This document shows, piece by piece, positions 10,769 to 63,427 of a DNA stretch of 64,000 nt. Position numbers and translations under genes: made by a program. The DNA is taken from contig JALMLS010000062.1 of NCBI GenBank assembly GCA_038496445.1, positions 186,001 to 250,000 of the forward strand, given 5' to 3'. Numbering within the stretch: position 1 is the first letter of the stretch; each line of letters starts with the position of its first letter. This DNA comes from Trichosphaerium sp. ATCC 40318 (lineage: Eukaryota; Protista; Tubulinea). The notes under the pieces are model-generated. The model was not told the DNA's origin. It made no database searches and worked only from the letters and a program-made list of their open reading frames with translations.

Positions 10769-10899
10769 CAAACCCTTACGGCAATGTTTTTGTATATTGT
10801 CTCATTAAATGCCCACAAATACCACTTATTTGCCTTTAAAGCGGTTTTATTATGTTATTGTGTTTGTTACTAAACAATAATGTTGAACGTTAAGAAGCA

Positions 10900-13270: not shown

Positions 13271-14039
13271 GGGTGCTGAAAATTAACAACGTGTTAATTT
13301 TTTGTTTTCGGCTCTTGTTGGGTTGATATATTCTCCGCAGCGTGTCGTAACTATTACTCCATTGTTCGTTCCAATCGCAGTAGTTGGTGGACATAAATAA
13401 AATGAATGTTCTTCGAGAATGTAAAGTGTAATTCCTGCCTACGCATGCTTGGTTAATTTCACGATTAATACGTTCGAAGAGTGCAAAGACTACAGAATCC
13501 AGACCAACTGCGCAAATACACGAACGTAAAGTTGTTTTAGTAGATTTTTTGCAAACCAACTCTAAATGACCTAATATCGCTGTAACTAACTAATTTTGAT
13601 GCGTTGTCGCCGACAAAATGACGTACCGGTTTTTCGCTTTGAACAGCTTGCAAGTTATTAAATAAAGCATTCTAAAACGTCACCTGCCTATTTAGACCTT
13701 TTTGGCGACGTTCCAGCAAACAAAACGTGATTTTGCCAAAGATGTAACGACACGCTAAAAACGTATTTCGTACTCTTTACTATTTCTCCGTGCGCCTGAG
13801 GTTATTATCGAGATACTATAACGCCATTCCGTGAGTAATCGATGTCTTTGCCGGTTTTTTTTAAATATTTGAAAAAGTCAAGTGGCATCGTAAATTCTAG
13901 TCAGACTGCGAAGTTTTGCCACAAATAGATTGCTACGCAGTTCGGCTCAGCTTATCGCATTTTAAGTCAAAATACTTAGCTTCTCAACCTCAACAACTCC
14001 TCTAGTACTGTCCTTCATCACAACATCATCGCCAACCTA

Positions 14040-15600
14040 TTTTCAATACGAACGACTAAGCGCAAAGTGCAGTCTTTGCATAAACTTGCTCGTCAGCCTC
14101 AGCATCCGTGCTACAGCAACGGCACTAAAGGAGACAGGTAACGCAAGTAGCAACCATCCAAAAGCTGGCTACGCGCACTTGACAGTATCTTCACAAAGCA
14201 TTTAGCATCATGCCTAAGGGTATGATACAACTAGGTGGTACGAACGGAAGATTGGCAATAGTGAAATCTACAAATTCCTGGACGAAGGCTTCCATGACTA
14301 CAGATGTCTCTCATTGGATACTTGGCTGTAGAACTTTATCTAGGCGACCACGCGGGAATGGATCGATATGATCAACACAACGCGATTCGAGTACCTCGCA
14401 GAGCAATACACAAATTCTGGGCGACAAACTAACAGACTGACAGAAGCCAGGGCTCCAGAGTGTTCGTTAATTTGTTCAGAAATGCTTTGACAAAACACAA
14501 CTGCAGTGGCTCTACTGGCCACATAGTTGATGCCATTTGCGTCCACAACACGCATCACGAGTTTCTCTCGTGCTTGCAAGAATAATCTATAAAAAAACGC
14601 TTGTATTGAAAAACAACTCTCAAAATAAATGTACTATACCTCATACCAGCTTGCCTTCCGTTGTTTGTAGGTTGTAATAGAAGTTAGGTCAGTTGGACTA
14701 AGATCCCTAAAGTTCCTCACTTTCATGTCTTTCAGGGCCATCCATTCACCGTCTTTGGAATAAACGTCTTTTATGACATTAACTTTTGATACCTCTGTAT
14801 TCTAGGCACAAGTAAAACAATACATGATTAAATGTCTAACAAATACCTGCGAAGATACTTGGTTATCCAAGGCTGTGGCTAATCCAATGAAAACGCGAGG
14901 TAATGCGATGAAGCGAATAGCAGTTTTTGCTGGTACTTTTTTGTAGATTAAAGACGATAATAAGAGACTTTGTAATGGCAATGACACTGCTCACAGGGTT
15001 GGTTATTTTACTTACGAGTGACAAAATTAACAATATGACTACAACTCAAATCAACGTTGATGGTGCTATAGTTAGATCTAAACAAGTAGATAGCCAAATA
15101 GCAACTTTACTGCCATTAACTACTTGCAGTATCAATTTTGTTTTGTTCCTTTTTGTCGTGTCTTTAACCCATGTCAAAACACATTCGTTGTCAGAGTGAT
15201 GTAGAACCTTACACGACACTTTTTTTATCACATGCTTTCCACCAGTGCTTCTTCCAGTAACAAAAGGAGTCTAAATTCTATTGTTCAAGTTTTTTGCCAC
15301 ATATGAAAATCCTGTTTATACAGCGATATACAACTGTTCAGGGCTTTATGTAGGATGGCGAGGGGGGAAAAAGTAGGGACTGAACAAACAGAACTGTAGG
15401 AGTACAAGAGAACCATTCGATAGATTACAAAACATGTTACAAGTAAGTCACTAGGTGAAAACATCTATGTTGACTGTTAAACAACATCTTCTGAATTCAA
15501 ATCAACTATTGATTACAGATCCACTCATCACTTTGACGGAATATGGATTGTCACGAAACAAAATTGGGTGTTTATTTTACCCGGGTACAATTCACAAAAG
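14040..15600. pseudogene. Fragments of further decayed genes on both strands
   Basis: Exon-like open segment 14640-14801 (-) bounded by AG/GT; stop-broken frame with an intron at ~15290-15590 (+). Confidence 0.3.
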
Positions 15601-16022
15601 TTGCGGGATTTATGCATCCTAACTTTTCACTTCCGTTCTGTTTTCTTTGAATCTGTGAACTAGTTTTTAAGCTAAACTTTCTACCACAACATGGAATGTC
15701 CTTAAAAATACAACCGCAAATAAGTATCTTATCAAAACCGAGTTCCTTTTCGGGCCCATAGACCCAGTACCCAATGGAACGCATCCCAAAACCCCTTTCG
15801 CAAAAATACAAGCTTGTAAAAAATTCCCTACTTCGCCAGCTACCTTGACAGATACAAGTTCTTGACGCTAAACTCCTATAAGGTTCCTAAAGGTAATTGA
15901 CATGGTTATTTTTCAAAGAAATTTCTCCTGTGACGTAATATGTGTTTGTGACCTAAAAAAATGAAACCAAAATCACATGTTTTCAAAAACAGCAAAACCG
16001 CAAACCAAAAAATCTCAAGACA

Positions 16023-17145
16023 ATGAAACAACACGTCTGTATACTGCTTCTACTTCTGTTATGTGCTACTTCAAGTATCTACGCTTACTGGCAAACACAT
16101 GCCTCTGGTAACCAGATCGTGGCAAAGAGATACCAAAATAGGTATTTTGTCGCAAGCGGACCTTATACAACTATAACGTGGAATGTTGCAGATGGAGATA
16201 AATTCATTCCGATGGAGTACTTATCTTCCACCCACGGTACTTTTACTTTGTTTATAAAGCCGGGTAAAATGTGGATGTTAGCGTACATCGATGATACTAC
16301 AAAGGAGTGGCGTGTCGCGGAAAGCGGGAGAGCTAGAATTGGGTCTTGGCCAACAAAGTGGAACGACAAGTATGTCTCTGGACACTTCGACAGCTCAGCA
16401 CATAAATCTTTGTTCGTACTCAACCCAGACGGTAGATACGCAACTCTCAGTATTGAATATTTCGCTCAATTCGGTCTTGATGGCTTCACGTGGACACAAA
16501 TCCAATACGCAACAAACGGAGACATTTCTTCTTCAGATCAGATTATTTCGGGTTTTTTTGAAGTAATCAACCCTGATCCTCAAACATATGTCGGTTCATA
16601 TCAAATCCACTGGGTATAAAGTGATGAACTACAACAGAAATACAAACAGCTGGGATATTCTATCAAGTACAACGTCAGGACGAATATACTGGTGGGTGAT
16701 CAATCCAAATGACCATTATGTTGTAGGAAGCTTCTATAATTCTCCTAGAGAGGATCTCTTAGCTATAAACTCGTACGGATGGCATCATACAATGAAATTT
16801 GATGGAACTACAAAACAGTTTGTTTATACAGAAGGAGGACATGGAGGTCTTATTGGTGTGTGGGTCATTCATGATAGCGATACTTTTCTCGGTGGGAACT
16901 TTGACGTGTCTTCATATTCTAGCACTGATGCCGTTGTGGCCATTAATCATAATGGTTATTCGCAAATGATGAAGCTTGTGAACAATCAGTGGACTTATGT
17001 AACTGGTAATGCTGGCGATGGGTTGATTGGTACTTGGCATATTGGTTCAGATGACCACTATACGCAAATCGAAGCGGTTGGATATGGGCGCAGCAGATTA
17101 ATTTGCATTGGTACTAGTCAGGCATGGGCAAGTGTTAACGAATAA
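16023..17145 (+). CDS. Intronless secreted FG-GAP/VCBS-like beta-propeller repeat protein, split by a +1 frameshift near 16593
   Basis: Signal peptide; repeats of form IGxWxxxxxDxYxxGxF...L/VxxN.G in both overlapping ORFs; removing one G in GTCGGTT joins them (QTYV-VHIKSTG). Confidence 0.65.
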
Positions 17146-17507
17146 GAAATAAATTCGCCGTTTTAGTTAAAAATAGTCTTGACTAGCTTGTATTCGTTGA
17201 CTATCGAACCTTGTGTTGTCTTTACTGAACGTACTCAATTTGCCAATACCTGCCTTCTTTTATTTTAAATCGACTCATTACTTATACCAGGCACTTCACT
17301 GGATCTATGTTTGATTCCGTGTACAAAAGCTTATGATATTTGTATCGAAAGAAAAGTACAAACTATATCTGGATGTAGAATTGTTAGATGTGATTGCAGG
17401 CGTAGTTGCTTTGAGAGATTTCCATTGGTACCACCAAACTAGAACTTACAGAAATTTCAAGTTTTTTTTCTTTTTTTCTTGTTCTTTGAATTTTGATAAA
17501 ACATATT

Positions 17508-17546
17508 TGGCGACACGAGCAGGATTTGAACCTGCGCGGGCGAAGC
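17508..17546 (-). pseudogene. 3' fragment of a tRNA-Ser-type gene (part of variable arm, T arm, acceptor strand, G, CCA)
   Basis: Minus strand GCTTCGCCCGC-GCAGG-TTCAAAT-CCTGC-TCGTGTC-G-CCA; no D arm or anticodon arm adjacent. Confidence 0.75.
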
Positions 17547-17743
17547 TATGTGATTGTGAACTTTTTATGTTAATTGCGGTAGACAATTTACGATTAAAAA
17601 TTGCGATAAATTTTTCTCAATTATTTCTTAGTACTATAATACGATTTTATTGAATAATCTGGCCTTTTCAAGTAATCTCATCCGCAGTTATAGGAAGGGT
17701 GTACGAAACACTATACTTAGGACCAATGCACGCATTGCTACGC

Positions 17744-19736
17744 TTACGAGTCTGTGAGTTCTACCATTGATTTATCTCCTCGCGTTGCGGTTGCGACGCT
17801 CTAGAAACAATATTAGTGATTGTGTTAACGTACCAATTAATTAATTTGTTTACAACGAACCTTTGAGGCAAATGGAAATACACGATCGCGTATTGGTTTA
17901 ACAAAAACGGTAACTAGTATTACCACCAATACAATGAGTGCAACAACAATGGGTACAGCTATAGCCACTGCCAATGGGAAAGAGTCGGAGTTACAAACAT
18001 CCGATACACTGAATATCACGGACAACTCGCCAGCGTTGTTCTCTTGCGAGTGAGAAACATGTTGACAATCATTGTCATCAAATGTTGCATACACATCAAC
18101 CTCGAAATCATCTTCACAAAGAGTATTGTTTACTGTCAAGAAGTGTATCTTTGTATTACCAACTTCCAGTTCTTTATTAAGATTGATAGTGATGTTTGTG
18201 GAGACAACACAACCTGTAAGTATTAGCATAACTAGTAAACACTTACGAAAAAATCTAAACGTACTGCCAATTGTGAGTACAGGTACACGGCCTGTGTCAT
18301 TATGTTGGACTAATACAATAGGTGCTCCTGTCAACGACACTGCAACAATATCTTGTACGATTATAAGACGACCTGAAGGGTGGTGAGTACAAGCTTGAAT
18401 CAAATTTAATACCATCAACACAATCTGCTTGAGTTTGCGTGTTTCCGCAGCTGCTAGGTGGCATAACCGGAGGATCTACTGTTGGTGGCAAGGAAGTAAC
18501 CGCCGTAGGTTCTATGGTTGGTGCTCTTGTTGGAGGTTCTGTAGTAGGTGGTTCCGTTGTAGGTGGTTCCGTTGTTGGTGGAATAGGCACAAGTCGTTGT
18601 AGCATTCCTACCAAAAAGTCGCCTCCTCCATCGTCGAAATTATCGTCTCGCAGAAAGCCTTGATCTCCCAGAACAATGAAAGAACCCAAACCTTATATGT
18701 TTGTTAGTAATGCCAAATAATGAAAACAACAATACCATGAGTGACTTCAAGAATAACGTTGTAAGTCGTTCCATCATACATTAATGTGCCGAGTACGGTT
18801 ACGTTGAATGAAGGCGTAGGGTTAGGTGTAAAGTACCCAAAGATGTTGGTAAAAACTACAGGTGGAGTGGATGATACGGCCTACACGGATTTTAGATTAC
18901 GTTTAAATTAGAAAAGTACATGGAAGACGTCATTCTGGCCATCCGGATCTTCTCTCCTAAATTCAAACATATCTACAAGTAATGAGAACATAAAATTTTA
19001 TTGCTTCCAAAATCAAGCAAACTACATAAGAGTTCAAATAAAAAGCGGCTAGAGATTGGCCCTGAGATACGGAACAAAATAGAGATTTTAGCCCGTAAAC
19101 ATCAAGTTGTTTTTAATTACGAGAAGGTCATTCGGACCGTTAGGATGTTTTTACGGGATGTTCTCTTGTTTCGGACCAATATTTTGGCCGTCACCTCTAA
19201 GATTTTAAAAACTATCACGTGACGGAGAAATTATCGTGAATTCGCTAACACTGTTTCAAAATACGTACCAAGCTCGCTACAGAGGCCTCTGTTGTCGTTT
19301 TCACAAGATAGAAGAGCTTTTCCACCTATAGTCGTAATTACAAAGTTGGCAAGTGGAGTAGAACGATTTACCTCTTTCTATGAACTCTAGGAACGGTGCT
19401 ACTTCTTGTACGTTGTGCTCAAAGGCAAATGGAGCAAATACCTCATCTATGGGCATGTCGGCTGTTATAGACTATCGGGATGAGTAATCAACACTACAAG
19501 GGTAGAAAACGTACTTGGTTGGTTGGAACACGCCAAGAAATATTCTTGTTATTCAAATACATTTGAAAGTCTCTGTACTCTTCTCCGTTGCCCAAAGTAA
19601 ACGTGCCTCTGTACAGAGTCTTAAAGAACTTTCACTAGCATTTTTTGCTTTTTTTTTTGAGGTACCTCGGTTTGTCATAGACGACAATCCCCGCAACTAG
19701 ATAAACTCCAAAGACAACCAAAAGAAGAACTTTCAT
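17744..19736 (-). CDS. Membrane glycoprotein family, copy D
   Basis: ATG 19736; PPTTE repeats; tail KPIRDRVFPFASK-SVATATRGDK; one intron expanded to ~296 nt. Confidence 0.8.
19049..19200. repeat. Imperfect foldback (MITE-like) insertion in an intron of copy D
   Basis: CCCGTAAACATC (19092-19103) pairs with GATGTTTTTACGGG (19144-19157), with outer imperfect arms; absent from the orthologous introns of the paralogues. Confidence 0.45.
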
Positions 19737-28397: not shown

Positions 28398-28763
28398 TCA
28401 TGTATTCGCTACAACAATCAAATGTCCGCTTTTATTCCATTTTTTGTATACTCCATCTAACTTACCATCGACGTAATTAAACTGTTCCTTCAATTGGCCA
28501 TTGTCATACCACGTCTTACATTCTCCATACAACCTGCCATGATCCCAATACTCTTGACTATGAGCAGAAGAAGACGAACTATTCATCCGAAACTTTAACC
28601 ACTTTCGATGTTTTTTCAAATCCGAATCAAACCTCGTTGTTGATGCTGCCTGCTTAGACAGAAGTGGCCAGATTAAATACACTTTGACGTCAATATCAAT
28701 AATATAAAGTTGTAGCTCCATAGGAAGGCCTAATAAGTGTCCATACTCCGATCTCTGGTTCAT
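28398..28763 (-). CDS. Short F-box-like + MORN-variant repeat protein
   Basis: LLGLPMELQLYI...WPLLSK N-terminus; GECKTWYDNGQLK repeats; paralogue of the adjacent gene. Confidence 0.65.
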   Translation of the reverse strand: MNQRSEYGHLLGLPMELQLYIIDIDVKVYLIWPLLSKQAASTTRFDSDLKKHRKWLKFRMNSSSSSAHSQEYWDHGRLYGECKTWYDNGQLKEQFNYVDGKLDGVYKKWNKSGHLIVVANT

Positions 28764-29400
28764 CTAGGTTTTTTTTGGATGTTAGCTGTAGAAACTTGTG
28801 GTGACGTTCTCCGTGCTAGAAGAACAGAAATAAGGTGTTATTTTTGTTTTCTAAAGTCAAACAGCCAGTAGTTATCTCAAAATGATCTTGATACTGTTTG
28901 TGTAACACTAGTGTTACTGTTATATGCGCTAATTTCAACTAAAGACCTACTTACACTATTTCAAAGAAAGCCACAAAACTGCAAGACTTAATCAAGGCAT
29001 CCATTGCCAATACCCACTACTTGTGTAACAACACTTAGTCACTATTGATAATAGTTGTAACAATCTATCACTGAGGCCGACATGTTGGTTGCCTGAGGTT
29101 TCCGGAGTGCGTCTGCCCTTGATGAATTGATGTTACAAACACGAAAAAAGTTACTTTGCAGAGAAAACGTATGTTTAATACATTAGAACAACCTAGAAAA
29201 AGTTCAAATTGCTAGTAACGTATTAGCACCTAGGCATTGTATTGACTTCCAAAAAGTACCAACACACTGCTACAAATAAATTCAACTTAAGCACACACAA
29301 ACAAGTAGCCTCTTCCCATAACTAGCAAAAACGTAAAAAATACTGAGAAACAACTTTAAGATCTTTGGTTATTTTTGTCAGTTTATGTGCAGTCTAATTA

Positions 29401-31103
29401 TTATTCTACAAGATCACCATTGACGTAGCTACAATGGTTAAGTACTTGTCCATCTGAAGTCCAACTTTTGAACACACCATGTCTCTCACCATTAGAATAA
29501 TATACATTCATATGCAACTGCCCATTATCATACCATGACGTGTACTCTCCTTCATACTTATCATTAGCAAAAAAGCAGTTTATTCTCTTCTGTCCATTCG
29601 GATACCATGCAATGAACTCTCCCTCTCTACATCCGTCCTTATATTGTACCTTAATCTCAATCTTTCCATCAGTAAACCATGTCTTTGATTCTCCTTCCTT
29701 CTTACCACCAACAAAGTAAGATTTCATTTCCATTTGTCCATTCTCATGCCACATCTTACTTTCTCCTTCTCTAACATCTTCAACAAAATTACAATGCTCA
29801 GCAAGTTGTCCATTTTCATGCCAACGTCTATGCTCTCCTTCTCGTTTATCATTAGCATACTGAGATATCTTCCATAACGCTCCACCTTCATGCCACTCCT
29901 TCGCTTCTCCTTCTATTTTTCCTTCTTTATAATGACAATGAAGTGCCAACTGACCATTATCATACCATGTCTTACTAGAGCCATCAAGTAGGTCAAAAGC
30001 ATAAAAAAACTGAACTTTCAATTGACCAGTCTCATACCAAGACTTGCTCTCTCCATGAAGCTTATCATTCACATAACAACTTGTAACTTTCAACTGACCG
30101 CTATCATACCAAGCTTTAAGAATACCTTCTATCTTACCATCAACAAAAACTTGAAGCTGAGATAACTGTCCGTTTCTATGCCACTTCTTTGTTTCTCCTT
30201 CTTGTTTACCTTCAATAAAAAATAAATGTTCTTTCAACTGGCCGTTATCATGCCATTGCTTTGCTTCTCCTTGTATCTTACCTTTACAAGCAAAATACTC
30301 CTCTCTAAGTTGACCATTATCATGCCATTCTTTTCCTTCTCCATCAAGCTTACTATTGACACAATTGAAGTGTTGAACGAGTTGTCCGTTTTTATTCCAT
30401 TTCTTGACTTGACCTTCAATCTTCCCTTTAATATACATTGTCTTTCCTTCTAATTGTCCATTATCATGCCACGTTGTATACTCTCCATCCCGTTCATCAT
30501 TGACATAAGTGAATGTATACTTCAACTTACCATTCTCATGCCATCCTTTCTTTTCTCCTTCTAGTTTACCGTTGATAAAATGAGAAAGTGCCTTTAGATT
30601 TCCATTATCATGCCACATCAAGTACTCTCCTTCACGTTTTCCATTGACATAATTATGCTTAACAATCAATTTACCTTCTTCGTTATACATCTTACACTCT
30701 CCTTCTTTTAAACCTCTAACATATGCGAACTGATCACGTAATTGTCCATTATCATGCCAGTGTTTAAGCTCACCATGAGGTTCACCATGACTCCAATATA
30801 AGTGTAATTTGATTTGCTTTTTCGATGTTTCTTTGTTGACTTTTAGTAGAATCCATTTTCTGTGTTTTTTTAGCTCGCCATCGAACCTCGTCATTTGCGC
30901 CGTGTGTTTTGATAGTAACGGCCACTTTAGATATACCTCGAGGTCTATTTCAGCCATTTCAATGTGTAAATCACTTGGAAGGCTTAAAAGGCTCGTTTTG
31001 GCCCTTCGGTCGGTTTCCGGTATAGTAATCTAGTTGTATGTGCGTTAGGGGATCGAACGTTGGTTTTTAGCGGAAAACAAAGTACCTTGCGTTTAGTCGC
31101 CAT
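29401..31103 (-). CDS. F-box-like + ~19 MORN-variant (YwqK-type) repeat protein
   Basis: Micro-exon MATKRK (ATG 31103), intron, then one long exon with LLSLPSDLHIEM and 24-aa repeats GExKxWHDNGQL. Confidence 0.85.
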
Positions 31104-31784: not shown

Positions 31785-31859
31785 GCTTCTGTAGCTCAGT
31801 TGGTTTAGAGCGCACGACTGTTAATCGTGAGGTCGTAGGTTCGATCCCTACCAGAAGCG
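31785..31859 (+). tRNA. tRNA-Asn(GTT)
   Basis: Full cloverleaf GCTTCTG...CACGACTGTTAATCGTG...GGTTCGATCC...CAGAAGCG; T-run terminator. Confidence 0.97.
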
Positions 31860-34129: not shown

Positions 34130-34204
34130 CGCTTCTGGTAGGGATCGAACCTACGACCTCACGATTAACAGTCGTGCGCTCTAAACCAACTGAGCTACAG
34201 AAGC
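34130..34204 (-). tRNA. tRNA-Asn(GTT)
   Basis: Reverse complement of the 31785 gene. Confidence 0.97.
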
Positions 34205-34575: not shown

Positions 34576-36414
34576 ATGAAATCTCTTCTATTGGTTCTCT
34601 TTGGAGTTTGCCTTGTTACTGGCATTGTCGTCTACAACAGGGACAGGTACTGAGGGAGCTTCATCTCCATACTACTCTTGTGAGCTCTTTCTCAAACTCG
34701 TAAAGGGGGAGGTATACTCTAGGGAATAGTGGTGATTTTAGTATGTTTCAACAGTATTTGAATAACCAAAATATTCCTTGGAGAGTACCGGCCAATCAAG
34801 TACTTTAACATTTATTTCAAGCCTACACCACGTGGCTTACATTCGATAGTTTATTACAGCAGATATGCCGATAGATGAGATATTTGCTCCATTTGCCTTC
34901 AGGCACGAAGAAGAGGAAGTAGCGCCGTTTCTACAGTTTATAGCACGAGGTAAGGTTTCTTCTTACAATTCGAAGACGTTTGTAATTATGTTTTCAGGTG
35001 GAAGAGCTCTTCTAAATTGTGGAACAAGCAGCGAAGGTCTCTGTAGCGATTTTGGTAATTTATTTTAGAAAACTTGATAATCTAAAAAGCTAAAACCACG
35101 TGACGTGGTATTACATTCTGACATTCTGGAAACCTTATCCACTTCTTCGAACCCACTAGTTCTGTTCTTAAACTGTTTTTTAGCTATGTTTGGTTATTCA
35201 TCTCTTAATCCATCGGACCCTGAGTTCAACGTACTGCCTAAATACGAAATAGTAATTTTTTTTCTAAAACACGATTAGAAAATATCTTCAACGCCACCTG
35301 TTTGGTTCAGCAATATCTTTGGGCACTTTACACTTACCCCTACGCCTTTGTTCGATGTAACCGTACTCAGCACGTTGACATATGATGGCACGACTTACAA
35401 CGTTGTTGTTGAAGTGACACATGGTATTTTCGACAAACGAACATTTTTGATCACTTACGGAGCTTAGGTTTGGGTTCTTTCATTGCTATTGGAGATCCAG
35501 GATTTCTACTGAATTCGAACTACAATACAGATGCTGGACGCTTTGTTGTAAATATGCTTGAACGGCTCAACCCTATTCCACCGACTAGACCGCCTACTAG
35601 ACCACCTACTAGACCACCTACAATACCACCATCGACACTTTCGCCTACAACTAGTCCACCAACAATGACGCCAACTCGACCACCTACAACGCCACCATCG
35701 ACGCTTTCGCCTAGTACTAATCAACCAACAAGGCCACCAAGCAGTTGTGAAAGTAAATATACAAGAGCAAAATGTGTTGATGGTACAGTTTTAGAAATAC
35801 TTGATACAGTGGTACTTACTTTAATCAAAGGCTATTTTATAATTGAGACTGATACTACCATTGTGTTGCTTACAGGATCACCAATTGTATTGGTTCAAAA
35901 TACTACAACAGGGCGTGTACCAGTAATCACGCTAGACAGTACAGTTTTGTTATTTTCACTGCGTATAACTAACGTTCTCCACTCAGGGTGTATCGTTGAA
36001 ACAAACATCACCATCGATCTGAAGGAAGAAATAGAAGTTGGCAATACGAAGATTCACTTCCTAACTGTAAACGACACTCTTTGTGAAGAGGATTTCGAGA
36101 TTGATGTGGATGTACCGTATGATGACAATGACTGTCGAACTGTTTCATACTCGCAAGAGAACAATGATGGCGAGTTATCTCTTGTATTCAGTGTATCAGA
36201 TGTTTGTCAATCCGCTTCATTCCCTATGGCAGTTGCCATATCATTACCAATTATTGTCATAATTGTTGTATTGGTAGTTGTACTGATTATAATCTTTTTT
36301 CAACGTCAACACCAGTCACTAGACAGGTTCGTTTTCTTGCATTTTAGCACCTTACTACCCCTCTCAATTCTTATTAGAGTAATGAAAGACTACAGAAAAG
36401 AGACAAATCAATAA
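34576..36414 (+). CDS. Membrane glycoprotein family, copy E
   Basis: ATG 34576, signal peptide, PPTR repeats, tail RVMKDYRKETNQ. Confidence 0.85.
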
Positions 36415-46400: not shown

Positions 46401-46683
46401 TTGGAAACACGGTGAACAATGCATTGACTGTCACAGTGTTAGAGAAAACAGAAACATTACTGTATTCCCTAAATGGAAACTAACAGATGACTGCATCAAC
46501 TGTAACCTCGAACCGGATACAGCGCCATTGACTAGAAGACCTGTTCTCACCAATAAAGAAGATAAAACAAGATGCAACGGTGTTGCAGGAGGATGGGAAG
46601 GATCCAAAGGACATTCTTGCAACGGAACAGATGCAGAAGTTACAGCGCTGTGTAGTAAACAGTTCTTCAAACGCAGGGTTTGA
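43421..46683 (+). CDS. Reeler-domain protein continuing through a TM segment and internal signal peptide into an LPMO-like His1 domain; 3' end interrupted
   Basis: Signal peptide; Reeler motifs (YVPGEILDITV, YRGILMYA, GQW, APAKGTGKIYF); ...LVVLPSASA|HNWMNSPTRS...WASGHGG...YIVHWYWGGYRDCIDV; start approximate. Confidence 0.75.
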
Positions 46684-48421
46684 GAATCTGACTAACCTCG
46701 AGAATTTAGAACTTGCTTATTGTCGTACAATTTCAAATGGTTGCTTGTTACACCTGACTTCTCTCAAAAAACTTGAAGCTCATCATAGCGGGGTAACACA
46801 AGATGCAGCTAAGGCACTGGATAAATAAATCTGGTTGAGTAAAACAGTCCGTAATAGTTGTACATTGAGATGTTAAAATACATCAAGTCAATATCTCCAT
46901 CCAATGGAACCACAAATACTTCTACTTCTTCTAAAACCAGTTGTAAGTAAACAACAGCTATTATATTTTCTACAGACAAACCATACCTATTTTTTTAAAG
47001 TGAATGAACTAAGTAGATTTATTGCTGTACAAGATATAACAATGACATAATGCGTAACAAAAGTGAATCTGCACTTGTTATTATTGCAGGTTGGTTAAAG
47101 ATGGAGCTGTTTGGCGCCTGAAGCGATGAATGTACAAAGTAGCTTTGCGTAGACATGTGCTATATGGGCGTTTCGTTACTATCGACACTATTTTTATTGT
47201 TAAACAAATCTGGTCTACTATTTGTGTTTTTTAAAGCGATAAATGCATTACAAGTACTAACTACTTATCTCATGATGGAATTGAAAAACAATTAAAGTCT
47301 AAAACCAACAACGCTAGTAATGCATTTGTTATTACATAACCTGGTGTTCTTCACTCTCCTCCCAAATGAGAGGCTTGTCTATTGTGTTTAAAGTTGGTCT
47401 GTCACGTGTACCTTTTCATTGAGTATCCTTGCTTGCACAGGGTTCAACACCATTACTTCTTCATCTTGTAGGGAAGGCTAACAGAGTGGTGTACATACAA
47501 TAATATTTATGGTTGCTTCCTTATTTCTATAAAAGGAATAAAGGCTCTAAAAGATGTACATAACATTACACTCAGTGATCCAAAAGATTCATGGCTCAAA
47601 CATCTTGGGAATGCACACTGTTTGCATTTTAATGGAAAGCGAATGACAGATGATGGACTCAAATCATTGATCAATGTCAAACGCTTGGATTTGTACTTAT
47701 GTTCCAAGATAACAAACGCAGGGTTTGAGAATCTGACTAACCTCGAGCATTTAGAGCTTGCTTATTGTCGTACAATTTCAAATGATTGCTTGTTACACCT
47801 GACTTCTCTCAAGAAACTTGAAGCTCATCATAGCGGGGTAACACAAGATGCAGCTAAGGCACTGGATAAATAAATCTCTGTGTGAGTAAAACAGTCCGTA
47901 TTAGTTGTACATTGAGATGTTAACATACATCAAGTCAATATCTCCATCCAATGGAACCACAAATACTTCTACTTCTTCTAAAACCAGTTGTAAGTAAACA
48001 ACAGCTATTATATTATCTACAGACAAACCATACCTATTTTTTTAAAGTGAATGAACTAAGTAGATTTATTGCTGTTAATCATTCTTGAAAACAAGATCAT
48101 AACAATGACATAATGCGTAGCAAAAGTGAATCTGCACTTGTTATTATTGCAGGTTGGTTAAAGATGGAGCTGTTTGGCGCCTGAAGCGATGACTGTACAA
48201 TGTAGCTTTGCGTAGACATGTGCTATATGGGCGTTTCGTAAACTATCGACACTATACTATTTGTGGTTTTAAAGCGATAAATGCATTACAAGACTAACTA
48301 CTTATCTCACAAAGGTAAACATCACAGCAAAGAGAGATGGAATTGTGCAAAACACTTTCCTATTTTAGGTCTAGAACCAACGACGCTATTGTAATGCTAT
48401 TTGTTTATTACATAAACTGGT
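46668..48421 (+). repeat. Direct duplication (~46668-47344 and ~47713-48421) of an LRR gene 3' end plus downstream DNA
   Basis: Two highly similar ~0.7-kb units with small indels, both starting CAAACGCAGGGTTTGAG. Confidence 0.9.
47480..47873 (+). pseudogene. Intronless leucine-rich-repeat gene fragment
   Basis: LINVKRLDLYLCSKITNAGFENLTNLEHLELAYCRTISNDCL; frameshift near 47500 and no clear start. Confidence 0.65.
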
Positions 48422-48882: not shown

Positions 48883-49814
48883 TGGAGGTGTTGTTTCTGT
48901 TGTGTATAAAATTAGATACTATTTTGTCCGTTTTTCTGCTGGAGGTCCTTTTTGGGTCATTCTCTGAACAACTTTAATGTGTCAAATGCTTAGTAGGAAT
49001 TGGCTTTCCATAAACATTCTGCGAGATGATTCTACGTTTTTTAAAGTAAATATAACGATGTCATGCCCTTATTACGAAAGAGTCAACCATTTAGTGAAAA
49101 GAGTTAACCCAGAAAAGCGGGCGAGTGTTTGAACGTTTTTATTAGCTTGAATAAGGTGGTGAGATAACACTGAGTTGTACATAACCGCCTAGCTTTGTTC
49201 TATCGGTACTTTCTTACATTATCACTGAACCTATGTGCTGTTGTGTCTCTATGTCTCGTAATGTACTAAAACTATGCCAAATAGAATGGAAACATACTAA
49301 CAAAACAGTTGTGTTTTAGGTTGTAACAACTGCTTTATTACGGAATGGAACTTAGGCATTGAAAAAGTCTAAGACGATACATAATGAAGAGTATGAATAT
49401 CCCATAGTTCTGGATCTTACTCTGGGTCTGTGGATCTTTTGCAGCGGCAGTAGCAAAATGACGGTTGTTCCAAGGCTCTGGACGTCCTGTGATTGTTTGG
49501 CCAATAGAAAGTCCAGTATTAGCATCGCCTTGCTTTCCTGTCACTAAGAGCTACCAAGTAAATAGAGGCCAAAATTAGACTGGCTGAACCATCATTTAGG
49601 ATTCTAATAACCCACATGATCAAAGTGAAAACAATTTTTATACATAGTTGACATTGTAGCTTACAAATGCCAGATCTGCTTAAACTTCTACACTAAGCAG
49701 TTGGCGTTAAAATCACGTATATATATACCAAGCCTTGCACGAAATGAATTTTGAGGAAATAAAATTCCATACGCACAGCGACATCTTATGAAGGTTGGTA
49801 CACCAGTAAAAACC

Positions 49815-49892
49815 AAAAAGATCCATAGAGCCGAAGCTCCAATCGGTTTATTTGTAAGAAAGTAAGGTTGAGGTAAGATGACTGATGGATCT
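49815..49892 (-). ncRNA. Candidate novel Pol III small RNA, copy 1 (identical to copy 2)
   Basis: Terminal stem AGAUCCAU/AUGGAUCU, inner stem CAGUC/GAUUG, GAGC-UUCG-GCUC hairpin, T5 end. Confidence 0.65.
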
Positions 49893-50005
49893 GGAAGAAG
49901 TACGAGTGCAAGCAGTTTTTATTTACGATCAAAACCAAGATAAAAAAAAAAGTGGTTTTCAATATTACGCTACAATTGCGTCTAATCAATACGCACATGT
50001 AAATC
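49893..50005 (-). promoter_or_regulatory. Conserved upstream block of small-RNA copy 1 (TATA-like TAAATAAAA near -33)
   Basis: Shared by all three copies. Confidence 0.45.
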
Positions 50006-50227
50006 CAAGCGTAAATGTTTGTTCTTCTACATTTCATTTGAAACGAAAACTCGATTTTTTTTGGTTTTCGGTTTAGTGACTTGTTATCAGAAAACTCACT
50101 TGTTTTTGGATTTTCCAGTCAACTACTTTACAAACAACTGTAAAAAACCTTTGCACTTCATCATAGTTTACATTACTTTGTAATATTGGGTTGTAAAGGT
50201 ATAAGGTTAATACGTAATACTTTATTT

Positions 50228-51241
50228 CTATTTCTTTCGTGAAATGAGTACAGTGTCTGTTATATGTCCTCCTATGAATCCTTCTGTCTCTCTTGATTCA
50301 GTAACATAATCTTTGTTATTTTCTATATACTCTTTATACTTTGGTGACCCAGGAAATCCAACATTATCAGCACAAACATAGCTTCCTGGAAACGAGAAAA
50401 TTAATAAGTATCAAACTATAAAAGCCGCTCTTGGAAATGCTGGAACCAAATTGTTTAGTGAATTGATGTACCTGGATAAAGTAAGTTTAGACCTTCTGTT
50501 GTCTTTAAATCAGGAAGATACAAAGACTTGAGATGATCAATAAACAGAAAATCAACTTTTCCTGTCAAATTATCTCTCTTTGCAATGTCTTTTATTCTTT
50601 CGCCAGCAGAACCAACAATAACCTCTACAATATGGGATAACCTACAATACATTAATACTCATAATGGAAGGTACAAAATTGTAAACGTGACAAAGGTACA
50701 TACCCAGCATGTTCAATAATCTTTGTTGCAATGGCGGCATAAAGTGGATTGAATTCAAATGAATAGAACTTTGCACCTGGCTTATCTTTTATTGCGTTAC
50801 CCATCAGAAGTGCAGAGTAACCTGTATGACCACCATATTCGAATATTATCCTTTGAGCAACAACGATTTAGTTAAACCCAAAAGGAGAAAACGTACTTTG
50901 AATCGCTTTTTTTGATCATTTCTGTCAAGAATGCTCCTTTTTCATTACCAACGTTCATTAATATTAGTTTCGGCATTTTCCCTTTTACATCTCCAGTCAA
51001 GTCATCAAAAGCTTTGAGAACTGATTCAGGGTTTCCTTTTTTCACATTAACAAATCACGTGACAAAGATAAACATAATAGTGTTAAAACTTACCTTCTTC
51101 AGAGTTTGCTAATACATACTCTAGTGTATATTGCTCAGCTGTTTTACCTCTAAACATAAGCCTGATTTTTTGGGAGAGTGCTGGAATGACGAGAGGAGTA
51201 ACCTGTTTTAAGTAATCGATATAAGGAGAGATCTGCTGCAT
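50228..51241 (-). CDS. Catechol O-methyltransferase-like SAM-dependent methyltransferase
   Basis: MNVGNEKG, IFEYGGHTGYSA, VDFLFIDHLKSLYLPDL, ADNVGFPG motifs; 4 introns. Confidence 0.88.
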
Positions 51242-52635
51242 TGCTTGATAGTTGTTAGTATTTTGAAGAATGTAACTGTCGACGTGTTTTGAGTGACTTA
51301 ACAATATATTTTTCAAGTAATTTCTCGAATATATGAGACCCCACGTTATTCTCCTTATTGAGAATACGTTTTTTAGTATGTTGAAAGTGTATCACAATGG
51401 TTTTAAGTCAAAAAACGTGAAACACGAGAAGATTCCACGCTTTTATTCCCAATTTAGATTTCTTGCATTTTGCAACTTAACGCCCGACCTCTATCCCCTA
51501 CAAAAAACTACACCATCGCAATAGCGGTATTTTGCTGGTTTTCTAATTCCGGGTGTACTGTTTGGCCGGTAACGATTATTGGCGAAAAGTAGACGGGGGT
51601 ACAGTTTATCCGGCTACAAAAACACCAGTGTAAACGACATAACAAGAAAGTACGAAAGATCTGTCCATTCTATATATACTGAACCAAGTTGTAGGTAAAT
51701 TATATAGCACACAATCTTGGACTCTAACTGACCGTACCCTCTACCAAAATCTGTATAGATTTATTCTGTAAGATTAAGCATTAAACACCCTCTACGCTTT
51801 AGACGTAAGCTGCTATCTTTTCTTCAATTATAAGTTACGATTCAAGAAAGCAAACCTCATGGCTTTGCGCTGTTCTTAGTGTACCAGTCATGAAGAGCTT
51901 GTTGCTATCTTTTACTTTGCAACATGTTACTCAAATAGCATACTATTTACCAAGTAAAAATAAACCTTTACCATTAGCTATAGAGGAAGAAGATGAATAG
52001 CTAGTGAAACCGGTAGTTAAAAAACCAAATAGCAACATGATTTTCAAGTAGATGCTTTCATCATATCTTACAAGATATTCAGTTAACGACCGAGACTCAA
52101 ATCCGGAAAGCCCGAGGGCTAATAGAAACCAACAACGTTTGTAGAGAACGAGAGTAATAGATTACACTTGTTATATCCTTGTTCACTTAGGAAAACTGGT
52201 AATGCCGAAAAAAGTCACCATGTTATCAAACCACCCTAACCACGTCTAACAAATTAATTGTTGGAAGATTAGGTGACTGGTTGAAAAAGTCAGTTGACGT
52301 TTAGTTGAAATAGATTGCAAACTATTGACCAAGTAAAAATATACAGTAAACCTGTTTGCGTCAAATTAAGCGGACTCGGACAAAATGTATACGCGGCTGG
52401 AAAAACGTTAGTACTTAGATGATATACGTTTTAGAGTATAGTGGTAATATTGTAAAGAAATCTAAATAGCAATCATGATTTTCAAGTAGATACTTTCATC
52501 ATAACGTATCTTAATAAGGAGAAGAACGTAGGTCCTCATATATTCGAGAAATTACTTGAAAAACATATTGTTAAGTCACTCAAACACGTAGACAGTTACA
52601 GACTTATATTTTCAAAACAATAACAAGTTAAAGCA

Positions 52636-53649
52636 ATGCAGCAGTATGATTACATAAACAAGGCAGTTGATCATTGGTGGTATTGCTAAGTAGCTGCCGT
52701 GTTTGTTGTGTCAAAAAGACAGTCTTCCTTTGTCATTCCAGCACTCTCTCAAACAATCTTTTCTTAAAGGTAAAACAGCTGAGCAATACACCTTAGAGTA
52801 ATGGCGAACTCTGAAGAAGGCAAGTTGTTAAATCAAACTGAACTCATAATGTTTTTTTGTCCACATCTAAAAAAGTAAAACTAATTTGTTGTGAAGATTA
52901 CTCAAAGCGGACTGACTGGAGACGTTAATGGTTGGTAATGAAAAAGGAGCATTCTTGACAGAAATGATCAAAAAAAGCGATTCAAAGTACGTTTTCTCCT
53001 TTTGGGTTTAACTAAATCGTTGTTGCTCAAAGGATAATATTCGAATATGGTGGTCATACAGGTTACTCTGCACTTCTGATGGGTAACGCAATAAAAGATA
53101 AGCCAGGTGCAAAGTTCTATTCATTTGAATTCAATCCACTTTATGCTGCCATTGCAACAAAGATTATTGAACATGCAGGGTATGTACCTTTGTCAATCTT
53201 GTTTACAAAAATCATAACCTCAATATGAGTATTAATGTGTTGTAGGTTATCCCATATTGTAAAGGTTATTATTGGACCTGCTGGCGAAAGAATAAAAGAC
53301 ATTGCAAAGAGAGATAATTTGACAGGAAAAGTTGATTTTCTGTTTATTGATCATCTCAAGTCTTTGTATCTTCCTGATTTAAAGACAACAGAAGGTCTAA
53401 ACTTACTTCATCCAGGTGCGTTAAAAAACATAAATACTTAACAAGAGCGGCTCTATGTACTTAGTTTGATACTTATTTTTTTCTTTTTCAGGAAGCTATG
53501 TTTGTGCTGATAATGTTGGCTTTCCTGGGGCGCCAAAGTATAGAGAGTATATAGAAAATAACAAAGATTATGTTACTGAATCAAGAGAGACAGAAGGATT
53601 CATAGGAGGACATATAACAGACACTGTACTCATTTCACGAAAGAAATAG
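52636..53649 (+). pseudogene. COMT-like pseudogene (5' part broken by indels and stops, 3' part intact)
   Basis: Alignment to 50228-51241 shows many small deletions and an insertion before ~52930. Confidence 0.8.
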
Positions 53650-53844
53650 AAATAAAAATTACATTTTAACCTTGTACCTTTACAACCCAATATTACAAAG
53701 TAATGTAAACTATGATGAAGTGCAAAGGTTTTTTACAGTTGTTTGTAAAGTAGTTGACTGGAAAATCCAAAAACAAGTGAGTTTTCTGATAACAAGAGCA
53801 CTAAACCGAAAACCAAAAAAATCGAGTTCAAACATTTACGCTTG

Positions 53845-53953
53845 GATTTACATGTGCCTATTGATTAGACGCAATTGGAGCATAATCGAAACCACTTTTT
53901 TTTTATCTTGGTTTTGATCGTAAATAAAAATTGCTTGCAGTTGTACTTCTTCC
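53845..53953 (+). promoter_or_regulatory. Conserved upstream block of small-RNA copy 2
   Basis: GATTTACATGTGC.TATTGATTAGACGCAATTGGAGC...TAAATAAAA (53921). Confidence 0.45.
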
Positions 53954-54031
53954 AGATCCATCAGTCATCTTACCTCAACCTTACTTTCTTACAAATAAAC
54001 CGATTGGAGCTTCGGCTCTATGGATCTTTTT
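53954..54031 (+). ncRNA. Candidate novel Pol III small RNA, copy 2
   Basis: P1 53954-61/54020-27, P2 53962-66/54002-06, loop 53967-54001, UUCG hairpin 54007-18, T5. Confidence 0.65.
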
Positions 54032-54209
54032 GCTTTTGTTTGATGCCTCGCGCTAGTCTTCAATGCCTTTTTGCTTTTGTTTCATTACTACAATAACGAT
54101 TTAATTGACTCCAGTTGGCAGGTTAATGCACTTTGTTTTACAAAAATGTGGTTAAGAAACAGGTAATAATGAGACAAATAAACTCTGTTAAAGGTAAACC
54201 AAGTTGATT

Positions 54210-57200
54210 TTATTCTTCAAGCATATGCGTTGTTGTTTTAGCTGACAAGAGTTCTTGGGCACGTGCAAGACCTACCGCAGCTTCCAATTGAAATGTGTCA
54301 TACCGAGAAAAGAGAACCAAGCTCTGAGTCTATCAAGGAAAAAACGATACCGTCAGCAAAGAAATAAAACAAGCAAACTATTCTTACCTCATTCGTTGAG
54401 TCAAGGTTATTTAAAAACTCTGGATAGTAGTTTGGTAGTGTTGGTAATCCGTAAAATACAACAGTGCGTGTCTGGTATATCCGAGATCTAGAAAAGTAAT
54501 CAATCGAATTTCAAGCTCAAAGTCAACGCCAAAAAACAAAAAACAGAAGAAAGTAAAGAAACTTGAATAGATTCGAATGACTATAACTCTGCATTCCACA
54601 GCTTATTATCTAACCCGAAAAGACTTTCATATCACAAGTATCATTCGCAAGAGTTTTACAAACATTTTCCAACTGCGAAAGAGGTGCAGATGTCGAAAAC
54701 AAATCAAATCAAAGGTTAAAAAAAAAAGCATACCTGAAAAAAAAGTGTTGTCGTTCTGTGTACAATAAAATGTCTGCTACACCCTTCTCAAAACGTTTAA
54801 GCTTTTCCATAGATTGCTTAGGGGCAATGTACCTTATTATAAAATAAGCACATAGAAGTTCAATACGGATTTTTATACAACAATAAAGATAAAAACAAAA
54901 AAAACGTACTCGCTGAGCGTTGCAAATCGTATTTCATGCTGCATATTCCTTCCTTGCTCTTCTCTGAACCAATTTCTAACACGCACAAGATCATAGTATG
55001 AAGGAAAGTACATTAGGACGTGTTTCTTTCCTTTTTCAAGGAGATGAGGCACAATCTTTTCTAAAAAATAAAGAAGTCAGCATTCCGCATAAAAATCAGC
55101 TCCCTGAATGCCCTCTTGGCATCCCAAAGCTAGGACAAGCTTTTTAAGGAATATGAAAGTGTACCTGTAAAGTGTAAGAATCGATTCTCTTCTACATCAT
55201 GAATACTACGGCCATCGATCCTAAAAACAAAAAAAAAATTAGTACAACATATCGTTGTTTCGCTATAATGACACTTACCTGTGGAATATCTGTTGAACCC
55301 CACTTATTGTAGATGCGCTTCCAGACTTGAAATTACGTCTAATTTTAAACATACCACGATAGTTACTGCAATGCTTATTCATCAATGAGTTGAACTCAAT
55401 GTGCATTGTTGATGTGAACATTAAAGTTTGCCTAAACTGTTTGTAAGAATGCTGTGCACAGTTGTAATTGACTTTTTTTTGTCCATAATATCCCAGCATA
55501 TGAATGGAATGGTAGCGCACCTGTGGTGTTGCGATTGTCCTTGAAGGAAGCGATCCATTATCGAAAAAACAGGAGAACTAAACCGAGATTTTGGAACTTC
55601 GTTTAGTCTTGTCATAATAAACCGGACATGCTCCCAATTCTGCATAAGCATAGTTTCTGGACTATCAATTACTACCAACTCAATAGAAGAAAGATAATCA
55701 TAAAAAGAAGCTAAAAAAGAAACAATAAGAAACAAGATAAAAAGGGTGAGATTCTCAAGAACTTTTTCACATGACTAAGTACGCAAACTATCGCTTGCTT
55801 TAAGGCCCCTTAATCCGTATTACCGACCAGTAACTTCTCGATCTCTATTAAATGTACAATGCGCGTTCTTCAAGCGATGGGGATTAAAGCAAAGCGACAA
55901 TCTTCGTGTGTAGTCTCAAAAAAAGAAAAGGAAGAAAATTATCAAAACCACAAAATTGATCGTACTCTGTTCTATTCTGACACGCAAGTTTATTGGACTT
56001 GCAATAATAATATCACTCTCTTTTATATCTGAATATAATTTTATACGGCCTTGTTTAAACCTTATATTTATCATAAAATCATCTCCAACATTTCCTCTCA
56101 TGATATGATTCCAATCATCTATTGAAAAAAAACCAAATGTCAGTTCGAACTTGTTGAGAAAACCATAATCCGTGATTATATAGATGTGGCGAGAGTATAC
56201 TCTGTTTATGTGTGTATGACTATGTAAGAGTATTTACCTGGTTTATTTGGGTTGGGATCGTCTTCCTGTTCAAAACCGTTTATGAAATCTTTAAGGTTCT
56301 CAACACAATCTTCAAGATTTTCTGTTTTAGCGTATTGGTTTGGAAGGAGTGATAAAAACATATTCACTACGTCATATACAATATTACGTATAGGTGCTAA
56401 TATCAAAACGCGCGGCTTAAAGTATCCTACAACACGTCAAAACGAGTGAAAATTTATAGAAAAAATAAGAAAAAAATAAGAAAAATAATTAAACGCTTTT
56501 CCTTTACCTCTATCTTTTTGAGCGTTAACGTCACCGTTCTCTGTCTTTTTCTCATTCTTTGCAATGGTTGCAAAAGCTTTAAATAAATGATTCATAATAT
56601 GTAGTACATAAGTACGTCTTATATTATTTTCGTTCTTTGCACTCATCCTACTGAATACTAAATCTTTATATGCATTTTGTAACGTAAACAGTCGCTGTTG
56701 CAATCTAGACATTGGCATATTCTCAGTCTGTGATGCTTTAGATTGAGACCTTAATGAAGTCCACTTCTCCAATAAGTTATTACGGATCTAATAGTACAAA
56801 TCAGCAAAACAATCAGACACAATCAAAAAAAAGATGACAATACAAACTTTTTGTTTTTTTCTTTTGAAGTGTTCTTGCTATGTTATCTTGCTTATAACTT
56901 ACCTCGTATGATTCTATATTATTATACAATTGCGGGAATTCTGTAGTAGAGAAATTCAATCCCATAAAATCCCAGTCAGGATGGCTATGCTGCGTGAACT
57001 TTTTCTTGATATTTTTTGTTAATATTTTTTCATCTGATACTTCTGGCATAAAAATAGCTCTAACAGCGATTAAACTCTCTTAAAATACTTCAAATGCTTT
57101 GAAACCAATCAATATAATATTTATAAAGCGTACTGGAACGAGTTTAAGCTATTTGTGACCTGTCTTGGTGGTTTTTTCGCAAGCAACTTTTTTTCTCGCT

Positions 57201-57673
57201 TTTCTGGCGTTTTACGCTGCTTTGGTGGCGTTCGTTTTATTTTTTTAGGCGCTGGTTTTTCTAGTATGGTCTGGGCGCGCCTCTTCTTTGGCTTTCGATG
57301 GCGTTAGAAATAAGTTGAGAAAAAGAATACGAAAAGCGTATTTCGCATTACATGCGCGTGTAGTGTGAGTTTTATCGTACCTTAACGCCTAGCGAGTTCA
57401 AAAGAGAGCTGTATGCGTCTTTTGTTTCAAAGTTGGTTTCTTCAAGATCTGCGTTGTCGTTTGACGCCGTAGCTTAAAAAGAGAATGTTTTAATAAATTA
57501 CGTTGAATTAAATCGCATAATATACCTCCTGGTTTACTCTTCTTGCCCAATAGGTGCGTTACATCTTTGTAAATAATATTATTATCATCGTCATTCAGCA
57601 ATTCTTCCTCTACAGGATCTAGACGTTTTCTGGGCGCGTATTTCCTTGGTTTCTTGCCCCCTTTCCGTGGCAT
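54210..57673 (-). CDS. UTP25: U3 snoRNA-associated protein 25 (Utp25/DIEXF)
   Basis: PRVLILAP, GNVGDDF, IKLYSD..SDIIIASP.NLR, DYLSSIELVVID...MQNWEHV, RQTLMF motifs. Confidence 0.9.
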
Positions 57674-57750
57674 AGTTGCGTTGTGAAAATAATTGGTTTT
57701 TGATTGTACTTGACTGTTTTTGTCAAAACGCCATTTTAACCATTTGCCGC

Positions 57751-58708
57751 ATGACTTCCATACCAGAAGAAGCTCCAATTGATACCTTGCCGTACGAAAT
57801 ACTTCTAGATATTTTGTTACGCTTAAAACATCTGCGTGATCTACTACGTTGTGAGAGTACGCATTACAGTGTTGTTTCGGTTGAAAAACGGTAATAGGTG
57901 TTTGTAAACATTGGAACATGCTCTGTGGAGATAACTACCTATGGAAGCGCATGTATTTAACGCTGTTTGGGCGTGAGAAGGAGCATTTCGCAATAGACTT
58001 CCGTGAAGATATTTTTAACACAATTCGAAAATTGGGAGCACCTAGGACATCTACAAGGCTTTTAAAGAGGCTGAGGAACGTCTTAGGAGGGCCTTTGGGT
58101 CCTATTGATAACCGGCGGTTAAATAAGGTCAGTGAAAAGCGCTTTTCTTGCTTTTACACTCTATTCCCAATTTGTACTACAAATTCCCGTGTGCCTCCTA
58201 CATCTCGTAGTTGTTGTAAGAACACACAAAGCTGGTTCAAGTCATGTTCTAAGTAGAGTGGAGCCTTCGTATTTTACTGACTTTTTTTTTTGGTAGATTA
58301 AGAACTTTGTCAAAATTGGTGTTGATGTAAACGACAAGCCACAGTATACAGGACTCACGTTTCTTGAGCTTGCTTGCTCAAGGATACCAAACCCTGTTAG
58401 TACTTGTCGTGTACTATTGAAGGCAGGTACGTACAATGAAGACTAACTAAAAAAAAGTGACCTAGTACATTTTGTTTTCCTAAAGGTTTATTGGTAGGTG
58501 CAGAAATAACTCCTTTGGCAAAACAAACAGCAGCAAAACATAGGCATTGGTACATTGCCTATTTCATAGTTAGTACGCTAATTGGTTGTATAGCTCTAAA
58601 GAATTGGCTGAATTGTTTCACGAATTTGAAGTAGCACCTATTAAAAGAGAATATCATGTTCTTATTCGTGGGTGGGAAATATTATTAAGTAAGAACAACA
58701 TGAAGTAA
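57751..58708 (+). CDS. F-box + ankyrin-repeat protein
   Basis: IDTLPYEILLDILLRL...CKHWN...DNYLWKRMY; KIGVDVN...TFLELAC...LLKAGAEI. Confidence 0.75.
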
Positions 58709-59218
58709 TAAGCAAAAGTCAAATAAAACCGAAAACCAAAAAAAGCGAGTTTTCGGCGAAGTTGCAAAAAATTGATTTCTAGTTGTTGGTCTAAACCACA
58801 TGTTTCTTCAGAGCTCTAACTAAGCTAAAGAGCTTTGAGGTTCATTTTTTTTTGCGATAGACTAGTCCAAAGCCATCAATTGAGTGTGTTTAGCCGAATT
58901 TAACAAAAGTGCAAAAAAAGGATAATATTGTTGTACCAATGTTTTGAGCGAAAATTTCACTTGAGAGAGTTACTAATAGTCATATTTCTGCTCCACCAAA
59001 GCAGTTTCGCTTGCTAAAAAAAAACAGCGCAAAACCTTCATTTTTGGCATCGCGTGGGTGATGCTAGCGTAGCATTATTTCAACTTTGCCTCTGCCTTAA
59101 AACTCCAAACCACAAATCAACAACCACTCCACACGGTTATTCTACGCACAACAAATCAGTGTAGAGTCGGTAAGTTAAAAATAACAGTCGTCAAAATGTT
59201 GAAGAAAAAAGCAACACT

Positions 59219-59331
59219 GATTTACATGTGCGTATTGATTAGACGCAATTGGAGCGTAATATTGAAAACCACTTTTTTTTTAATCTTGGTTTTGATCGTA
59301 AATAAAAGCTGCTTGCACTCATTCTTCTCCC
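59219..59331 (+). promoter_or_regulatory. Conserved upstream block of small-RNA copy 3
   Basis: Same block as copies 1 and 2; TAAATAAAA at 59299. Confidence 0.45.
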
Positions 59332-59400
59332 AGACCCATTAGTAATTACTACTTCATCTGCCGAAAAAATACTGGAGCTTCGGCTCTATGGATCTTTTTT
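59332..59400 (+). ncRNA. Candidate novel Pol III small RNA, copy 3 (different loop)
   Basis: AGACCCAU/AUGGAUCU, UAGUA/UACUG (compensatory changes), identical UUCG hairpin, T6. Confidence 0.6.
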
Positions 59401-59585
59401 GTTTGTTGCTTTTTGTTTGATACCCTCGCATCGCTCTGGTCTTCAATGTCACTGTTTGATTTGGCCTTTTACTTTTGCTTCATATTTCTTTTTGTGAGAG
59501 CGTGTCTTCTACACTTATCGAGACATAAACTATTTCAACGAATCTACTATGTTACTTTAGCTAAAACCTCTTGGTGATAGCACAT

Positions 59586-63352: not shown

Positions 63353-63427
63353 CGCTTCTGGTAGGGATCGAACCTACGACCTCACGATTAACAGTCGTGC
63401 GCTCTAAACCAACTGAGCTACAGAAGC
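63353..63427 (-). tRNA. tRNA-Asn(GTT)
   Basis: Same sequence as the other two; partly conserved upstream GGTGGCT...ATCATAT.CAA. Confidence 0.97.

Follow-up and report, generated by a model that had tools for sequence, protein, structure and literature searches.

The stretch of DNA analysed here, 64,000 nucleotides long and called the window below, covers positions 186,001 to 250,000 (forward strand) of contig JALMLS010000062.1 in assembly GCA_038496445.1 from the amoeba Trichosphaerium sp. ATCC 40318. It contains three genuine loci of a predicted small RNA gene. Copy 1 (78 nt including a T5 run) is located at 49815–49892 on the minus strand, copy 2 at 53954–54031 on the plus strand (T run at 54027–54031), and copy 3 (69 nt including a T6 run) at 59332–59400 on the plus strand. 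All results given here apply to this window and to two independent RNA sequences, since copies 1 and 2 are identical (78/78 positions). Each unit, 69–78 nt long, is closed by pairing of its ends, contains a UUCG hairpin and has a T5–6 run directly after the closing stem. At the 5′ end of the copies the RNA starts with AGAUCCAU or AGACCCAU, and it ends with AUGGAUCU at the 3′ end. The 12-nt hairpin GAGC-UUCG-GCUC (49828–49839 on the minus strand, 54007–54018 and 59375–59386 on the plus strand) occurs exactly three times in the 64 kb, each time inside one of the loci. An earlier reading of this DNA, the original prediction, had proposed the three loci with hairpin and T run, and our data agree with it in this respect. 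A covariance model that we built from the three loci (R1) scored 87–102 bits at these positions and at most 12.8 bits in the rest of the window, and no fourth copy was found with it in the 64 kb.

The terminal stem of the RNAs comprises 7–8 bp (53954–53961/54020–54027 in copy 2) and starts with AG. In copies 1 and 2 the predicted pair probabilities of this stem and of the UUCG hairpin are mostly above 0.9; for the terminal stem they range from 0.7 to 1.0 in copies 1 and 2 and from 0.5 to 0.87 in copy 3, which has one mismatch. This is a C-A mismatch at position 4, so that the U/C difference between the terminal stems does not represent a kept base pair. An inner stem (53962–53966/54002–54006 in copy 2) encloses a loop of 35 nt in copies 1 and 2 (53967–54001 in copy 2) and of 25 nt in copy 3 (59345–59369). 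RNAalifold returned a three-way junction as consensus structure, and such a junction is plausible as a model. It can hardly be called a constant scaffold, since the inner stem is marginal: its pairing probability is 0.61–0.66 in copies 1 and 2 and drops to 0.01–0.02 when copy 3 is folded alone, which then favours other folds. The base changes in the inner stem are those described in the original prediction, which took them as covariation. Only one of them, at the edge that closes the loop, is two-sided, two further changes are one-sided, and the covariation score was equalled by 240 of 500 shuffles. In copy 3 the loop also contains GCCGAA (59360–59365), the exact complement of UUCGGC (59379–59384) in the hairpin of the same RNA, which implies a fold competing with the hairpin.

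Upstream of the RNA all three loci have a block of 113 bp in common. It has an abrupt edge about 110 bp ahead of the start and may serve as external promoter (copy 1, 49893–50005, minus strand; copy 2, 53845–53953, plus strand; copy 3, 59219–59331, plus strand, with 107 of 113 positions identical to copy 1). Beyond this block copy 3 cannot be aligned to the other copies. A TATA-like box, TAAATAAAA, is present at −33 to −25 in all three copies (49917–49925 on the minus strand, 53921–53929 and 59299–59307 on the plus strand), in agreement with the roughly 110 bp of shared sequence and the element near −33 noticed before. A second box had been overlooked: AACCACTT (AACCAC box) at −65/−64 resembles the Dictyostelium upstream sequence element (DUSE) and lies 58 nt before the first G in copy 1 (49950–49957, minus strand), 57 nt before it in copy 2 (53890–53897, plus strand), and at 59267–59274 (plus strand) in copy 3. 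The upstream block also includes a run of 9–10 T, and the predicted start is the first purine downstream of a pyrimidine run. The upstream boxes together with the oligo-T run at all three loci support the view, as already put forward, that these are members of a U6-type small RNA gene family with external promoter. Downstream of the T run, copies 2 and 3 have about 35–45 bp in common (54032–54065 and 59401–59448), which are absent from copy 1. At all three loci a hairpin-like motif of 26–31 bp follows the 3′ end of the gene that lies upstream (50044–50074, 53803–53828 and 58726–58755); its distance to the shared block is no more than about 40 bp in copies 1 and 2, and it precedes the block by about 460 bp in copy 3.

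An inverted duplication (49809–51370 and 52503–54037) of an intron-containing O-methyltransferase (COMT-like) gene carries copies 1 and 2 at its 3′ ends, which confirms the earlier caveat that these two copies stem from one duplication event. Exons and 3′ flank of the duplicated gene are nearly identical, the introns are strongly diverged, and the duplication ends about 6 bp beyond the T run of the RNA gene. The RNA bodies of copies 1 and 2 are identical, whereas 8 of 109 positions differ between their upstream blocks (P = 0.02; 0.07–0.14 if compared to all flanks). Copy 3 is nearer to copy 1 upstream and nearer to copy 2 downstream, and between copies 3 and 1 the inner stem and loop have diverged far more strongly than the promoter (4/10 versus 6/113, P = 0.004). 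This mosaic of a copy 1-like upstream part, a copy 2-like downstream part and a diverged middle fits gene conversion between the copies.

As another explanation, the loci may be a duplicated block without function, or the terminal part of a short interspersed element (SINE) or miniature inverted-repeat transposable element (MITE). The sequence that copies 2 and 3 share downstream would be in line with this, as would the identity of copies 1 and 2, which is weakly above that of the flanks (P = 0.02–0.14). Moreover, in RNA contigs from four runs spliced UTP25 mRNA is represented and none of the small RNA genes is covered, although contigs lose short RNAs, so that this lack of coverage is no evidence of silence. 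At none of the three loci did we find a target-site duplication, terminal inverted repeats, or internal A and B boxes. Retroposed copies lose external promoters, whereas here two promoter boxes are kept at a fixed, expected spacing, the T9–10 run in the upstream block would stop read-through by RNA polymerase III (Pol III), and just three copies are present in 64 kb. We therefore consider a non-functional or mobile origin to be very unlikely.

The gene for UTP25 (54193–56800, minus strand) is convergent on copy 2. It contains at least nine RNA-supported GT-AG introns with the donors GTAAG, GTACG, GTGCG and GTACA.

The loop of copies 1 and 2 is devoid of G over 35 nt (P = 7e-4) and contains CUUAC three times (P = 2e-4 for that word; 0.03 for any 5-mer). 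The two loop types had been described as unalignable, which holds for the overall alignment (shuffle P = 0.07), but both begin with UUACnnC and end in an A-rich run. The original prediction proposed a guide-like RNA family with a variable loop; in this reading a constant scaffold would carry exchangeable antisense loops directed to different RNA or DNA targets. The divergence of inner stem and loop relative to the promoter looks indeed as if a cassette had been swapped. The term hypervariable is nevertheless not justified by two loop sequences, one of them unchanged between copies 1 and 2. A search of the window for complements of the loops gave longest matches of 13 and 11 nt, which is the chance level, and the common start motif and A-rich end speak against this reading. 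In addition, G-poor loops of low complexity make poor guides, and signatures of C/D, H/ACA or Sm RNAs were not found. Of all explanations considered, a guide function appears the least probable.

The repeated CUUAC allows for another mechanism, in which copies 1 and 2 would bind 5′ splice sites of the type GUAAG through base pairing of their loop and compete with, or replace, U1 small nuclear RNA (snRNA). The 5′ end of U1 snRNA contains CUUACCU, which is complementary to GUAAG donors, and the first of the three words in the loop likewise reads CUUACCU. Outside the RNA genes, the first loop motif of copies 1 and 2 finds a 10-bp pairing partner at one site alone, the donor of the last intron of UTP25 (54382–54391), which is supported by RNA and lies 360 bp away. 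By estimate, about 0.5 10-mers of this kind are expected among the AGGTAAG sites of the window, so this pairing is near chance. Unlike in U1, the word is internal here, it is missing in copy 3, neither an Sm site nor the U1 stem-loops are present, and the genes have a Pol III-type layout. The same word is also found in the Class I RNAs of dictyostelids, which are mainly cytoplasmic. A role as U1 mimic in splicing is thus improbable.

To relate the RNAs to known families, we scanned the window with Rfam. The Rfam library includes models for Class I and Class II RNAs. At gathering and E-value thresholds the scan revealed three tRNA-Asn genes and nothing at the RNA loci, as the original prediction of no match to a known RNA family had implied. 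An Sm site, C/D boxes, an ACA box or a telomere template were not detected in the small RNAs. Hammerhead, C/D, H/ACA, U7, vault, telomerase, permuted tRNA and Helitron/Helentron ends had been considered as candidates and were dropped, as their signatures are lacking in the sequence. Exact pattern scans of metagenomes and of viral contigs gave no match. A gapped pattern matched 120 loci (84 of them distinct) on contigs of 46–76% GC, and none of the loci inspected had a terminal stem together with a T run. Searches with model R1 near UTP25 in two dictyostelids and in Balamuthia yielded nothing significant.

Class I RNAs of Dictyostelia, described together with Class II RNAs (PMC7919456, PMC3188802), are abundant and required for normal early development in Dictyostelium (PMC7919456). 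They had been set aside in the original prediction because of the additional hairpin of the RNAs described here. Some published Class I members do have a hairpin before the 3′ stem strand (PMC7919456), and the ends of group 1 and 2 members are almost the same as those of our RNAs; for these two reasons Class I is the closest match. We compared the RNAs by eye and by short patterns, without a model score, to the curated set of 143 members (counted by hand) from PMC7919456. Class I members outside D. discoideum often begin with GAUCC or GAUCU and end with GGAUCUG or AGAUCUG (PMC7919456); by our count 14 of the 143 end with GGAUCUG. The RNAs of the window have the ends (A)GAUCCAU...AUGGAUCU, compared to GAUCCCU...AGGGAUCUG in several Class I RNAs of group 1. 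All three copies have a short stem joining the ends and the conserved first G, as is the case for Class I RNAs. An 11-nt motif with invariant U3, C6, C9, A10 and A11 is typical of Class I (PMC7919456). In copies 1 and 2 (49868–49878, minus strand, scored on the identical copy 2; 53968–53978, plus strand) the motif UCUUACCUCAA matches all five invariant positions and 8 of 11 positions of the group 4 consensus (P = 0.004 against shuffled loops for the first four loop registers; 0.02 anywhere). Copy 3 has a partial motif (59344–59354, plus strand) with three of the five invariant residues and, like some members of group 1, UUACUAC. The spacing between promoter box and first G (57–58 nt) falls within the 56–60 nt of expressed Class I genes without TGTG box. 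Further likenesses are the size range, multi-copy intergenic genes, a T-run terminator, the 5′ G after A, and the G-poor loop, which resembles the variable, A/C/U-rich interiors of Class I RNAs, several of which repeat CUUAC and end in A-rich runs. When these features were combined to a short Class I grammar, it matched the three loci alone in the window and nothing in 80 null sequences.

Several results weigh against assigning these RNAs to Class I. The grammar was tuned after the loci had been seen, and A/C/U-rich sequences easily match one another. In copy 3 the motif lacks two invariant A residues. In all copies it starts at RNA position 13–15, behind a second stem of 5 bp and 7–9 nt further in than in Class I, where it directly adjoins a terminal stem of 6 bp. 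The terminal residues are CAG...CUUU instead of AAG...CUGU, and the RNAs end with CUUUU, not CUG. AACCACTT departs from the dictyostelid DUSE WCCCATAA at the last two positions (TT versus AA), and it fails the dictyostelid DUSE matrix, on which the near-identical AACCATTT scores −4.4. The TATA-like box and the fixed UUCG hairpin are differences from Class I, and CUUCGG does not occur in any curated Class I member. The Rfam models for Class I and II RNAs did not match 120-base stretches at the loci even at E ≤ 10, six other amoebozoan genomes gave no Class I genes in a published search, and the RNA contigs mentioned above have no piece over the genes. Since defining features of Class I were tested and are lacking, we do not file the RNAs as Class I members.

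These failed features (motif position, CUG end, DUSE consensus and Rfam model) would be explained if the genes constituted an unrelated orphan family of protein-binding Pol III RNAs, which reached the same layout of closed stem, open loop and oligo-U independently. Y RNAs and nematode stem-bulge RNAs (sbRNAs) are examples of this layout (PMC4726728, PMC4450293): they are also Pol III genes with paired ends, a lower and an upper stem, an oligo-U tail and a variable pyrimidine-rich loop. Their loop motif UUA(U/C)C is matched by UUACC at the loop start of copies 1 and 2, but not in copy 3, and the fact that UUACC fits this motif as well demonstrates how cheap such short matches are. The hallmarks of Y RNAs and sbRNAs are not present: the stem is fully paired or has a C-A mismatch instead of the bulged C of the Ro60 site, the GUG-CAC upper stem is missing and no RUG occurs on the 5′ side of the inner stem, a hairpin takes the place of the bulge, and the RNAs are shorter. 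As the ends, the motif, promoter spacing, loop composition and the host group jointly speak for a single family, an orphan origin is unlikely. If it applied, the genes would still represent an unclassified small RNA family.

The reading that we favour, with a little less than even confidence, is a small multi-copy family of Class I-like protein-binding RNAs in a non-dictyostelid amoeba, which act as decoy or scaffold and not as guides. The RNAs look like Class I RNAs and probably also work like them. Pol III would be positioned by the DUSE-like box at about −60 and the TATA-like box at −33, start at the first A after the pyrimidine run and stop within the T5–6 run, giving rise to an RNA of 65–78 nt. 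Paired ends and UUCG hairpin would form a stable closed frame that keeps the G-poor loop open, and the RNA probably displays this loop in single-stranded form. The loop may offer its UUACnnC-type motifs to a protein with RNA recognition motif (RRM), as in Dictyostelium, where DdR-21 binds Rnp1A, so that the RNA would function as protein decoy or scaffold rather than by base pairing. The copies may have multiplied through duplication of DNA and piecemeal gene conversion. This would account for copy 3, in which a different middle is flanked by a promoter and a 3′ end that are nearly identical to those of the other copies.

We regard it as a tentative possibility that the RNAs are true Class I homologues, the first outside Dictyostelia, which in a distant, non-dictyostelid amoeba carry a stem and a UUCG hairpin in addition. 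Class I RNAs have been described as restricted to social amoebae, and their link to the origin of aggregative multicellularity is based on this (PMC7919456). True homologues in this host would make the family older than aggregative multicellularity and weaken that link, and the CUUAC-bearing loop may then act on proteins that bind splice sites or branch sites. If the families are related, the genes would provide an outgroup for finding out which Class I features matter, imply an earlier origin of the family, and make the age of the RNA-Rnp1A pair relative to multicellularity testable.

The position of the host was evaluated by UTP25, with identities scored exon by exon. The host protein shows 31–35% identity to dictyostelid orthologues and 31–36% to fungi and animals, compared to 55–71% among dictyostelids across the same stretches. 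As host UTP25 is no closer to dictyostelids than to fungi, the host is very probably not a social amoeba. Dictyostelids occupy several of the top ranks for UTP25, which fits a long-branched amoebozoan.

The window has a GC content of 37% and is intron-rich. Two intronless open reading frames with MORN repeats (518 and 121 aa) and an F-box-like start are located at 28398–30957 (minus strand) within this otherwise intron-rich region; we take them to be reminiscent of giant-virus genes. The three tRNA-Asn(GTT) genes are identical (31785–31859, 34130–34204 and 63353–63427), and two of them have about 50 bp of upstream sequence in common and are in inverted orientation. At least five dispersed or inverted gene copies for a Pro/Thr-rich membrane-anchored protein were seen at 1–19600 and 34600–36400. 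Finally, a tandem duplication of about 500 bp with 97–98% identity is present at 46668–47176 and 47713–48239, with the two units 1045 bp apart.

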